Assembly: GCA_002269645.1 (NCBI GenBank) | Contig: NIVC01000630.1 | Location: 124,001 to 188,000 of the forward strand | Source of the DNA: Macrostomum lignano | Lineage: Eukaryota | Length of the DNA stretch: 64,000 bases | Direction: 5' to 3' | Part shown: positions 33,015-39,704 of the stretch, piece after piece | Layout: the number at the start of each line of letters is the position of its first letter | Numbering within the stretch: position 1 is the stretch's first letter | Position numbers and translations under genes: made by a program | Notes under the pieces: generated by a model | What the model was told of the DNA's origin: nothing | Seen by the model: the letters and a program-made list of their open reading frames with translations, nothing else | Database searches by the model: none

Positions 33015-33085
33015 CGAGAGCTCAGAGCAAAAGGTGAGCTCAGAGCAAAAGGTGAGCTCAGAGCAAAAAGTGAGCTCAGAGCACA
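33015..33085 (+). repeat. 18-bp repeat GAGCTCAGAGCAAAAGGT (about 4 units) overlapping the CaaX gene stop codon
   Basis: Direct reading. Confidence 0.85.
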
Positions 33086-36000
33086 ACACAGCAGGACGAC
33101 GTCTGCCTTCTCGGGGGCGGCGGCAGCAAGTCCGGGGTCGGCTCCGGGACCACACCGTCGATAAAGAACCTGTCGAAAAATTGAATTGGGTCCATTTTTT
33201 ATCTTGAATCTCTGCGCGACTTCGGATTTCTGATCAGCCATGCCATGATTCTCAACCGTCTGGGTCTCACCTGAAGCAGGTCACATAGCTATGATTGGTC
33301 AGTTTGGTCAGCATGACGTCACAGTTGGCGTGCTTCACTTCGTCAGCCTCGGCTGGGTGAAACACTTGGATGGTCTCGGCCGACACGATTCTGGGCTCTG
33401 GGTAGGAGTTTTCAGTTTTAATTTAGAAATTTAACTTTTGATAAATAAATAATTGTTTAGAAATTCCGGGTGCCTTTCAGAAGGACATTGGGCTGAAATC
33501 GGAGTGACATGGTTGAAGAACGGAGTCACAGATGGTTGTTAAAGACCGGACTGACAGATGGTTAAGCATCGGAGTGACAGATGGTTAAAGACCGGAGTGA
33601 CAGATGGTTAAGCATCGGAGTGACAGATGGTTAAAGACCGGACTGACAGGTGGTTAAACATCGGAGTGACAGATGCACAAAGATCAGAGTGACAGATGGT
33701 TAAACATCGGAGTGACAGATGGTTAAACATCGGAGTGACAGATGGTTAAGACCGGAGTGACAGATGGTTAAGACCGGAGTGACAGATGGTTAAACATCGG
33801 AGTGACAGATGCACAAAGATCAGAGTGACAGATGGTTAAACACCGGAGTGACAGATGGTTAAACATCGGAGTGACAGATGGTTAAACATCGGAGTGACAG
33901 ATGGTTAAGACCGGACTGACAGATGGTTAAACATCGGAGTGACAGATGCACAAAGATCGGATTGACAGATGGTTAAAGATCAGAGTGACAGATGGTTAAA
34001 TACCGGAGTGACAGATGGTTAAACATCGGAGTGACAGATGGTTAAGACCGGAGTGACAGATGGTTAAAGATCGGAGTGACAGATTATTGTAGATCGGAGT
34101 GACAGATGCTTAAAGATCGGAGTGACAGATGGTTAGACCGGAATGACAGACGCACAAAGATGAGCCATCATCCACAAAATCCTCACTGGTGACATTCATC
34201 CAGCTGGCAATTCTGCCGCAGGTCATCTGCACAGATTCGTAGCTCTGATCTCCCGTCTTGAAGGGCACAAAGACTTTAGTAGTCAGTAAGCCAGTCTGCA
34301 GCAGTGGCAGCTGCGGCCCACCATACGTGAAGATGATCTGAAAGCCAAGATAAATGTTTTCAAGAAGATTTTGCTGTAAGTGATTAGCGCCATAACTGAC
34401 GGCTCACCCTGAGTGTAGTTAGCATAAACGAAGTCACAGAGCTCGACCGATCAACAGAGTGGCTTCGATAAGGATTCTCCACTTCGGCCCATTCTTTCCA
34501 CCCTGTGAAAAATTACAGAAAAAATTCTCAATGCTCTACTTTCAGCGTCTGGTTAGTGTGTTTGCGTATTTATCGCTAATAAACATAATTTTACAGTAAT
34601 CGCTTACTCAAATCGCCGCCATCCATATTGACGAACAGACGAAACGATTGCAGATCGGTGACCCGGACATTCTGGCGCGGGTGGCACAAATAGGGGAGAA
34701 TATTAGTTTATCGTACACTTATTAAAAGGTGAAGCGTCGTCACAGTTATGACCAAAACACTCACCGCGTGATTTTGTCCGATCCATTTAATAGCCTTGTT
34801 AACTAGCGAAGTGTAGTCTGAGAATTTCGGTCGCTGCATCCCGGACCGGTGCGTGGCCTCGGGTAGGAGGCTGACAATGCCTGGGGTACAGCGAGCGATT
34901 GGGTTTTAACTGAATTGTACGCTGGGCTTTAAAAAGTTCGGCATTGAGGTCAGGGGCTGAGGAGTTGGAGCTAAGGGAATTGAGGTTTGGGCTAAGGGGT
35001 GGGGCTATTGGGGTTTGGGGCTATGAGGTTGGGTGTTTAAGGCTAAGGGGGCTTGTGGCTAATGGAAGGGTGTTTAGGCTATGAGATTTTGAGGCTAAGA
35101 TGGTTGGGTGTTTGGGGCTAAGGGGGTTGGGTGTTTGGGGCTAAGGAGGGTTGGGTGTTTGGGGCTAAGGGGATTGGGTGTTTGGGGCTAAATGGGTTGG
35201 GTGTTTGGGGCTAAGGGGATTGGGTGTTTGGGCTAAGGGTTGGGTGTTTGGGGCTAAGGGGATTGGGTGTTTGGGGCTAAGGGGTTGGGTGTTTGAGGCT
35301 AAGGGGTTATGAGGTTTTGGGTAGGGGTCTGTGGTTTTGTAGGAGTGCTGCATACTTTGGGAGGCCCTGCTAGGGGCTGAATACTATTTCTTCCTTCCAC
35401 AATACTAAAATTTCAGAACTGCAGTCGGCTTAGGCAACGCATAGCTTACCAATTTTCTCGTTGAGCGGCGGTCCCACCATGTAGTAGATTCGCAGCCCGA
35501 TCAGATAGAACTTGCCCTTGTCCTGGCGCACTAGCTGGTAAGTCTTGTCCAGATCAATATTGCGCTTATTGCCCCAGCGTTGGAACAACAGCTCCATCTG
35601 CTCCATGTTGAGTATGGTGCCCGGCAGCGGGTTGACTCCGAACTGCATGTTCATCGCGTCGCATGTCTGTTTGAGATCTTCGAATTCCGGAAACAGACTG
35701 TTGTCGGTTTTCGGAGCCGGCTTCGGCAAAACGTTAATGTACCACAGCTGCTGCATGGGTATGTCGTTGCGCTGGGTCACCCACATCCTGCAATCATTTC
35801 CACAGGCTTAGTTAGGGGGCGAGTCGGGATCATAGATAGGGGGGGGGGGGCGAGTCGGGATCATAGATAGGGGGGGGGGCGAGTCGGGATCATAGATAGG
35901 GGGGGGGGCGAGTCGGGATCATAGATAGGGGGGCGGAATCATAGATCGGGGGCGAGTCGGGATCATAGATAGGGGGGGGGGGGGCGAGTCGGGATCATAG

Positions 36001-39000: not shown

Positions 39001-39704
39001 CCCCTCTCGCCTCTCTCACTTCCCCTCTCAACTCTCACTTCCTACCACTCCCGACCACAATCGCTATCAATCTTTTTTCCTCAACTCCCAAACAGTTGTT
39101 TAAACTCACGAGAAAGACTCAAATCTAGGCGATATGTCCAGCCTCTGGTTGCCCTTCTGCTGGCAGATCGGGTAGAACTCCACAGACATCACGTGACTCT
39201 GCGTGCTCTGCATCATGAACCGGGGCGGCGTCGGGTTCTTCTGCGGCACCTGCTGAATCAGCTGCTGAGTGGCTGCGGAGTCGAAAGCAATGGGTTGGGG
39301 AGTCTTGTTGTGTCAAAGGCGAATCTGTAATCCCCTGTCTAAGTTACACAGAGAGTGCACATGCCTGACAGGATTAGAAAGTCAGGGGCGTGTGAGCGTG
39401 TGAGCGTGTGTATGGGCAGAACTCCACCTTGACGTCTACCGAATCTCCCTAGCAACAGAGGGCCGTCTCACTCACGATTCTCATAGACGGGCGGCCCTGG
39501 TACGCTTTCATCATCGGATGAGTCGCTAGACGAAGAACTGGCACCATCGCCAGAATTTTTCACCTGCCCTGGCGCTCTGTTTCGATGCTTCTTCTTCTCC
39601 GATCTGGCCTCCTTTGGGGCCGCGTTCGGCAGGTAGCAGGTGCCGTAGCTGGTCTCCTCAACGCGGACCCCCTCTGGCGGCGGTGCACTTGGTTCGACAC
39701 TCAT
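33076..39704 (-). CDS. Uncharacterised 514-aa protein with four ~90-aa repeats and a C-terminal CaaX motif (SSCCVVL*); exons 39704-39476, 39272-39110, 37025-36858, 35787-35450, 34880-34765, 34671-34608, 34502-34408, 34337-34187, 33397-33271, 33169-33076
   Basis: Ten exons join with consistent phases (1,2,2,1,0,1,0,1,2) into a 1545-nt frame with no internal stop. Eight introns are GT-AG and one is GC-AG. The internal repeat pattern recurs across exon boundaries. Confidence 0.85.
33500..34160 (+). repeat. 22-23-bp minisatellite CGGAGTGACAGATGGTTAAACAT (intronic)
   Basis: Direct reading. Confidence 0.92.
35010..35330 (+). repeat. G-rich ~23-bp array (ggggctaagggggttgggtgttt), intronic
   Basis: Direct reading. 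Confidence 0.85.
35815..36668 (+). repeat. G-rich ~24-bp minisatellite GGGGGCGAGTCGGGATCATAGATA, intronic
   Basis: Direct reading. Confidence 0.93.
37140..39030 (+). repeat. 1.9-kb pyrimidine-rich 21-bp minisatellite CCCCTCTCTCCTCTCTCACTT, intronic
   Basis: Direct reading; source of the 666-686 aa artefact ORFs. Confidence 0.95.

Follow-up and report, generated by a model that had tools for sequence, protein, structure and literature searches.

Which kind of protein is encoded by the split gene on the minus strand at positions 33076 to 39704 of a 64,000-nucleotide stretch of the Macrostomum lignano genome (assembly GCA_002269645.1, contig NIVC01000630.1, positions 124,001 to 188,000 of the forward strand; the whole of this stretch is called the window below, and all coordinates refer to it), and what might this protein do in the cell? 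A first-pass annotation, made from the sequence, had proposed a membrane-anchored product with four tandem domains and a geranylgeranylation signal. The analysis described here identified a 514-residue protein of an undescribed family, in which four homologous repeats are combined with a conserved C-terminal prenylation box of the CaaX type (Cys-a1-a2-X) and with an N-terminal arm that carries PPxY and PSAP motifs. We give a probability of about one half to the reading that this protein is a prenyl-anchored, possibly palmitoylated peripheral membrane adaptor, which would recruit NEDD4-type WW-domain ubiquitin ligases and, in part of the family, the endosomal sorting complex ESCRT-I.

The gene was rebuilt from the raw sequence by three-frame translation combined with splice-site context, and consists of ten exons running from 39704-39476 to 33169-33076:

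33076..39704, minus strand: whole coding region, 10 exons, coding sequence of 1545 nucleotides, 514 amino acids (splice junctions, translation, tblastn of the product onto the window)
39704-39476, 39272-39110, 37025-36858, 35787-35450 and 34880-34765, minus strand: exons 1-5 (splice junctions and translation)
34671-34608, 34502-34408, 34337-34187, 33397-33271 and 33169-33076, minus strand: exons 6-10, TGA stop included (splice junctions and translation)

Eight of the introns are of the GT-AG type and one, intron 3, is of the GC-AG type; the donor of the latter at 36857 (AG/gcaagt) has the form typical of this class, and the same junction is present in the NCBI protein P0001. At its two ends the gene is bounded by the A of the ATG (39704) and the final base of the stop codon (33076), exactly as had been annotated before, and 5′ of the ATG an in-frame stop is reached without any ATG in between. 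P0001, found by a word-indexed protein search and listed as 'hypothetical protein BOX15_Mlig026318g1, partial [Macrostomum lignano]', spans 514/514 residues of the product with a single mismatch, namely Leu155 in the window (codon 155 in exon 3, at about 36950) versus Pro. This is a difference between alleles or between duplicated copies, consistent with the partly duplicated genome of M. lignano. Translation of the 5′ leader, which runs on without a break in the window, accounts for the 65 additional N-terminal residues of P0001. All motif strings that had been quoted for the spliced product, which ends in SSCCVVL directly before the stop, are present, and with the agreement of an independent NCBI protein at all but one residue this product proved correct.

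The exon chain is further supported by homologues from other phyla, as these align over every exon junction without frame breaks. The published annotation of M. lignano, Mlig_3_7, is a genome-guided RNA-seq assembly generated with StringTie and TACO (PMC5730564), and the pattern of the gene name suggests that the locus tag BOX15_Mlig026318g1 belongs to it. The gene identifier was found neither in a full-text literature search nor in the supplements of M. lignano papers, where expression data were sought. Taken together, this is a real and presumably expressed M. lignano gene. A paralogous copy of the gene elsewhere in the window was not found by tblastn.

An undescribed family of four-repeat proteins

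An initial search returned only one distant relative, DgyrCDS6269 of Dimorphilus gyrociliatus (25% identity, E = 6e-28), whose tail CCSVA is likewise of the CaaX type. When a profile built from these two proteins was run exhaustively with HMMER against 1.84 billion cluster representatives, 259 clusters reached E ≤ 1e-3; thresholds of 1e-10 and 1e-30 were passed by 145 and 53 of them, respectively. Names were looked up for 30 of the 259 clusters. About one third of these were unnamed and originate from metagenome or read-archive assemblies, and nearly all others were listed as uncharacterised, hypothetical or unnamed proteins. The named clusters span nine invertebrate groups:

Molluscs: Mercenaria, Haliotis, Ostrea, Batillaria
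Annelids: Owenia, Capitella, Ridgeia, Dimorphilus
Nemertean: Lineus
Arachnids: Parasteatoda, Oedothorax, Cordylochernes
Myriapod: Strigamia
Tardigrades: Hypsibius, Paramacrobiotus
Hemichordate: Ptychodera
Amphioxus: Branchiostoma
Tunicate: Clavelina

In several species the family has two or three paralogues. The 30 clusters looked up included none from vertebrates, insects or nematodes, which does not by itself show that the family is absent from these groups. Searches against Pfam-A (24,736 models, to 2025) yielded no match for the M. lignano protein at E ≤ 1; 60 aligned relatives remained without a match at E ≤ 0.01, and the searches with nine of ten long relatives were negative as well, while the consensus sequences of the repeats gave sub-threshold noise only (HAUS-augmin3 with 15.6 bits versus a cut-off of 29.4). 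The same applies to the sequences in the PDB, where the best E-value that phmmer and hmmsearch reached with the protein itself, a profile of the family and one of a single repeat as queries was 0.13. The four-repeat proteins are therefore an undescribed family that is present in many bilaterian invertebrates, and their domain is undescribed as well; the first-pass annotation had likewise been unable to name a family.

The only other labels in the set, those of Cordylochernes and Strigamia, derive from a ZC3H11A-type zinc-finger gene. P0058 from Strigamia maritima (921 amino acids) possesses an N-terminal zf-CCCH_3 domain of the ZC3H11A type, the only domain fusion among the long homologues scanned, and P0026, the homologue of the pseudoscorpion Cordylochernes, carries ZC3H11A as a label. 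Both links probably go back to a gene model that was merged and to a name that was propagated, but they could reflect a conserved adjacency of the two genes in arthropods. The fusion was not used as a clue to function, since it most likely represents a gene model merged with a ZC3H11A-like neighbour. P0065, P0072 and P0095 form a subgroup, in which the N-terminus is extended by a long stretch and the tails are acidic and of the DEDCVLL type; P0072 (767 amino acids, tail DEDCCIL) is encoded by a single uninterrupted open reading frame (ORF) at L001 2001-4304, on the ENA metagenome contig ctg38800_42x_l (1.88 Mb).

The four domains of the M. lignano protein are supported by HHalign and by AlphaFold, which reports a confidence score for each residue, the predicted local distance difference test (pLDDT):

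35772..39192, minus strand: repeat 1, residues 104-192 (exons 2-4, over introns 2 and 3; AlphaFold strands and helix at pLDDT > 90; HHalign)
35475..35747, minus strand: repeat 2, residues 201-291 (wholly in exon 4; HHalign, AlphaFold)
34323..35456, minus strand: repeat 3, residues 298-396 (end of exon 4 to start of exon 8; HHalign, AlphaFold)
33157..34286, minus strand: repeat 4, residues 409-488 (exons 8-10; HHalign, AlphaFold)

Pairwise comparison inside the single protein is weak, with z = 4.4 for repeats 1 and 3, z = 2.4 for repeats 2 and 3 and the four other pairs at chance. Homology was judged on family profiles and not on these within-protein scores; for this purpose, a 60-sequence family alignment was cut into four sub-alignments, which were compared profile against profile. 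All six HHalign comparisons gave probabilities of 98.7-99.7% (E from 8e-26 to 3e-16, 85-93 columns). According to this sequence comparison the four repeats, each of about 90-100 residues, are truly homologous, which bears out the claim of four related domains. They have a common signature, [hydrophobic]-x-[DN]-[FV]-x-P ... F-E-x-[FL] ... A-N-x-W-L ... V-x-x-x-E-T ... R-x-[LI]-R-[LV]-[WFY], and the most conserved positions are equivalent across the repeats, namely Asn and Trp (helix), Glu (second strand) and Arg with an aromatic residue (last strand). Invariant throughout the family are Gly, Pro and Arg residues and the Cys of the CaaX box. Such a recurrence of conserved positions at equivalent places in each repeat fits a scaffold and not a single catalytic site. 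The positions of several introns are equivalent as well: introns 3 (end of exon 3 at 36858) and 9 (end of exon 9 at 33271) cut the codon of the conserved last-strand Arg in repeats 1 and 4 in phase 2 (AG/G), and intron 7 (end of exon 7 at 34408) directly follows the equivalent Arg in repeat 3. This fits an origin of the repeats by duplication.

An AlphaFold2 model was calculated with the 60-sequence alignment on P0001, in whose numbering the residue scores are given. The model has a mean pLDDT of 76 and a predicted template modelling score (pTM) of 0.72, with 314 residues above a pLDDT of 90. In the N-terminal arm, the scores are below 50 for residues 1-132, 146-152 and 156-164 of P0001, with values of only about 50 for the few residues in between. 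Outside the repeats, two segments are of importance:

39205..39704, minus strand: disordered N-terminal arm, residues 1-99 (exon 1 and start of exon 2; AlphaFold)
33106..33156, minus strand: Pro-rich linker GVVPEPTPDLLPPPPRR, residues 489-505 (family alignment consensus and tail listing)

The disordered N-terminus that had been expected is thus reproduced by the low scores of the arm. Since pTM is high in spite of a disordered N-terminal quarter, the remainder appears to form one packed body, and by prediction the four repeats make up a single rigid unit. The pseudo-symmetric assembly suggested earlier is supported in part by this, as far as the packing of the repeats into one confident body is concerned. 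In each repeat, AlphaFold places a strand, an optional short strand, a helix of 14 residues, a strand of 13 residues, a short strand and a strand of 13-14 residues; the repeated fold of the earlier description stands, whereas its beta-alpha-beta-beta pattern is one strand short of the predicted strand-helix-three-strand order. The Pro-rich linker (family consensus G.Y.EPP..LLPP.P) has a pLDDT of about 95 and is predicted to be packed on the body, so that only the last nine or so residues, CaaX box included, would form a flexible C-terminus. The highest Kyte-Doolittle hydropathy over 19 residues is 0.91 and, as no window scores higher, the protein contains no transmembrane helix; a signal-peptide or transmembrane protein was ruled out by the same maximum.

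The confident body was compared with known structures by Foldseek, a check that the first-pass annotation had proposed, and no significant match to the PDB emerged. With the whole model, the best PDB hit was the C-terminal domain of PCSK9 (E = 3.7e-3, template modelling (TM) score 0.15, root-mean-square deviation (rmsd) 13 Å), and the one match below 1e-3 in BFVD had a TM-score of 0.09 and an rmsd of 29 Å; neither is credible. A single repeat was modelled with a pLDDT of 91 and a pTM of 0.79 and found no significant match in the PDB either (best E = 0.15, query-normalised TM-score ≤ 0.48). The C-terminal domain (CTD) of 4.1G, KCTD16 H1, Alba and Cas6e were considered as folds of the single repeat and rejected, all of them with E ≥ 0.15. 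The CTD of protein 4.1 resembles the repeat in being a small strand-helix-strand domain (8i8y_A, Foldseek probability 0.94, target-normalised TM-score 0.61), but with E = 0.19, a query-normalised TM-score of 0.48, an rmsd of 4.4 Å, 13% identity and no match to Pfam 4_1_CTD it is a lead only and not a significant match. Provisionally, the predicted body therefore has no known fold, as far as the PDB and BFVD are concerned.

Predicted lipidation signal and putative recruitment motifs

The two ends of the chain carry short motifs, of which those in the N-terminal arm had not been noticed in the first-pass annotation and represent the best clue to function:

39681..39692, minus strand: PSAP, residues 5-8, TSG101-binding motif type P(S/T)AP (sequence)
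39483..39494, minus strand: PPVY, residues 71-74, PPxY-type WW-domain ligand (sequence; aligns with PPSY of the Dimorphilus homologue)
33091..33093, minus strand: Cys510, candidate palmitoylation site beside the CaaX Cys (sequence)
33079..33090, minus strand: CaaX box CVVL, residues 511-514 (sequence; TGA stop at 33076-33078)

By sequence, the M. lignano protein has the features of the CaaX class, with a Cys four residues from the C-terminus, Val at a2 and Leu at X. Conservation of this box in homologues, a point that the first-pass annotation had wanted checked, was analyzed in 151 family proteins, which comprise the M. lignano protein, its Dimorphilus relative and 149 representatives, many of the latter being fragments. 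A terminal CxxX is present in 93/151 of these proteins, compared with a Cys frequency of 1.9%, and in 90 of the 93 tails a2 is occupied by I, V or L. This argues for a conserved, canonical prenylation box, through which the proteins would be lipidated. Prenyltransferases are selective for the last residue, with X = Leu directing a protein to geranylgeranyltransferase type I (GGTase-I) and X = S, M, Q or A to farnesyltransferase. CVVL of the M. lignano protein accordingly points to GGTase-I, in agreement with the signal named in the earlier description. In the family this does not hold generally: the last residue is L in 42 tails, S in 16, M in 12, V and Q in 7 each, I and F in 3 each, A in 2 and D in 1, or, grouped by class, Leu in only 42/93, one of S, M, Q and A in 37 and one of V, I and F in 13, besides the single D. 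As X varies, the conserved feature is prenylation in general and not geranylgeranylation. A similar restriction applies to the adjacent Cys that had been put forward as a palmitoylation site. Cys510 is a plausible candidate in M. lignano, yet a second Cys is directly adjacent in only 23/93 CaaX-bearing homologues (within six residues upstream in 29/93), and palmitoylation would consequently not be family-wide. The 15 residues before the box are acidic on average, with a mean net charge of -1.5.

For the N-terminal motifs, 104 family arms with a mean length of 45 residues were compared with 300 composition-preserving shuffles. PPxY, with the consensus PPPSYEEV, occurs in 47/104 arms, where 3.3 were expected and the shuffles reached a maximum of 8. 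P[ST]AP is found in 7/104 arms (expected 0.95, shuffle maximum 5); each of these arms also has PPxY, and in some the two motifs overlap as PSAPPxY. PPVY of the M. lignano protein lies where pLDDT is below 50 and is thus predicted to be accessible.

A possible lipid-anchored adaptor and its alternatives

These features can be combined in one mechanism. Cys511 would most likely be geranylgeranylated by GGTase-I, followed by trimming and methylation, after which the neighbouring Cys510 may be palmitoylated. The four-repeat body would then sit near the cytosolic face of a membrane, and close to it, because in the model the Pro-rich linker lies against the body and leaves a flexible stretch of about nine residues only. 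From there, the disordered arm with PPVY and PSAP might recruit WW-domain proteins, above all ubiquitin ligases of the NEDD4 type, and possibly ESCRT-I, so that a lipid-anchored adaptor would bring ubiquitination and sorting machinery to the targets of the four-repeat body.

Adaptors of a comparable layout are known. LITAF has a flexible N-terminal region with PPSY and an overlapping P(S/T)AP, binds the WW domains of NEDD4 and is predicted to bind TSG101; this arm is independent of the C-terminal membrane anchor, and mutation of PPSY moves LITAF towards the plasma membrane (PMC5142333). LITAF/SIMPLE and CDIP1 share with the present family the Pro-rich flexible arm, and the family consensus PPPSYEEV and its PSAPP..Y variants are of the same form as PPSY/P(S/T)AP. 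In contrast, LITAF is a protein of about 160 residues with a zinc-binding LITAF domain and a membrane-inserted hydrophobic stretch, whereas the M. lignano protein contains neither a LITAF domain (Pfam) nor such a stretch and instead has a CaaX box and a 400-residue four-repeat body. The resemblance is hence one of layout and not of homology. NDFIP1/2 and ARRDC proteins are membrane-associated as well; through their PPxY motifs, E3 ligases of the NEDD4 type are recruited and activated. NDFIPs have a three-pass transmembrane core and ARRDCs an arrestin beta-sandwich, neither of which was matched here by Pfam or Foldseek, and the motifs of ARRDC proteins are C-terminal, while those of the M. lignano protein are N-terminal. 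In ARRDC1, PSAP and PPxY together drive the budding of microvesicles (PMC11873033). As the defining domains of the LITAF, NDFIP and ARRDC families were tested and not found, the protein is not a member of any of them, yet it may work like them.

With regard to the anchor, the closest likeness is to H-Ras/N-Ras, RhoB and paralemmin, which combine a CaaX box with a second Cys just upstream and lack a polybasic stretch. These proteins are prenylated, then palmitoylated, and traffic to the plasma membrane. Unlike them, the M. lignano protein contains no GTPase or paralemmin domain according to Pfam, and in its family the second Cys is present in only 29/93 members.

Several observations weigh against a lipid-anchored adaptor. 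A terminal CxxX is missing from 58/151 homologues, many of which are fragments, and also from P0005 and P0006, the closest full-length relatives, for which a mis-prediction or a real loss could be responsible. Membrane binding by one prenyl group alone is weak and biased towards endomembranes, the second Cys is lacking in most members, and with an acidic upstream tail (-1.5) there is no polybasic stretch that could serve as second membrane signal. PPxY is missing from 57/104 arms, for instance in a bivalve subgroup with tails of the GWGCSIS type; being absent in over half of the arms, it does not represent the universal function of the family. Lipidation, membrane location and WW-domain binding are moreover read from the sequence, and the putative binding partner of the body of about 400 residues is postulated.

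Part of this evidence would also be explained if the anchor were real, the body itself acted as a ligand- or lipid-binding or transfer module or as an enzyme, and PPxY controlled only the turnover of the protein. No other part of the protein is as well conserved or as confidently folded as the body, PPxY is missing in slightly over half of the members, and long curved strands about a helix, as they may be present here, are a common architecture of ligand pockets. However, no ligand-binding or enzymatic fold was matched in Pfam, among PDB sequences or by Foldseek, and the invariant Gly, Pro, Arg and CaaX Cys, together with near-invariant positions that recur in each repeat, look structural and not catalytic. 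We regard this explanation as unlikely. An endogenous budding scaffold, lipid-anchored and self-assembling, with PSAP and PPxY as late-domain-type motifs that call in ESCRT in the manner of ARRDC1 or viral matrix and Gag proteins, appears decidedly improbable to us. It would account for the presence of both motifs in the disordered arm of the M. lignano protein and six relatives, in some of them overlapping, and for the combination of a lipid anchor signal with a rigid multi-repeat body. PSAP and PPxY are established late-domain motifs of enveloped viruses (PMC8402826) and occur as such in the microvesicles of ARRDC1 (PMC11873033). But PSAP is rare in the family (7/104) and only modestly enriched over a shuffle maximum of 5, self-assembly is purely postulated, and the anchor is located at the chain end opposite to that of myristoylated viral proteins. 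The variant in which the body, as a new fold, would assemble at the cytosolic membrane face and, with motifs and anchor, act as an ESCRT-recruiting scaffold for vesicle budding or cargo sorting, and thus as a counterpart in the cell to ARRDC1 or viral matrix proteins, is very doubtful.

It is also conceivable that the terminal CxxX is a peptide ligand, for example of class I PDZ domains (S/T-x-hydrophobic), instead of a lipidation site, or that the gene model is an artefact. Some tails do fit the PDZ pattern, with T or S at a1 in 40/93 and L, V or I at X in 52/93. Against this, a constant Cys at -4 and an aliphatic a2 (90/93) define CaaX boxes and not PDZ ligands, CVVL of the M. lignano protein has no S or T at -2, and the gene model is backed by a database protein and by homologues aligning over all junctions. 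The PDZ-ligand tail was rejected for this family, and both versions of this explanation are extremely improbable.

If the protein is indeed a lipid-anchored adaptor for ubiquitin-ligase and ESCRT machinery, such an adaptor would be common to many invertebrate phyla and would so far have gone unnoticed. Its mechanism, a lipid anchor combined with a PY motif, would be a new build of a known adaptor type, and as no relatives in family or fold are detectable, it would add a new domain and a new class of prenyltransferase substrates. M. lignano is amenable to RNA interference. Transgenesis is established in this species (PMC5730564).

Intron minisatellites and neighbouring genes

The stretch is eukaryotic DNA with split genes and introns rich in minisatellites. 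Four introns of the four-repeat gene are largely filled by such arrays, which are located at 37152-39036 (intron 2, 21 bp x 90), 35846-36669 (intron 3, 24 bp x 33), 35088-35306 (intron 4, 23 bp x 9.7) and 33498-34150 (intron 8, 23 bp x 28.6), and which give rise to long spurious ORFs on both strands. The M. lignano genome consists of simple and tandem repeats to 15% (PMC5730564), and the arrays in the introns fit this share. An additional 18-bp tandem array at 33018-33083 (3.7 copies, 97% matches) starts within the last codons of the gene. Since the final Leu codon and the stop (CTC TGA) belong to the 18-bp unit, the 3′ untranslated region opens with copies of the gene's own end.

Six exon-sized ORFs in the window were assigned to other genes by Pfam:

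283-1269, 4680-5330 and 8815-9198, plus strand: neighbouring ORFs
17106-17957 and 45161-45610, plus strand, and 54565-55176, minus strand: neighbouring ORFs

The families represented are SH3BP5, START, RF-1 (with the GGQ motif), SCAI, C2H2 zinc fingers and doublecortin, the RF-1 member being a peptide chain release factor of the mitochondrial type. These are ordinary animal genes that are unrelated to the four-repeat gene. In addition, the plus strand contains at 60745-61971 an open frame of 408 amino acids with hydrophobic stretches and no Pfam match, which possibly represents one exon of a further membrane protein that is unannotated.

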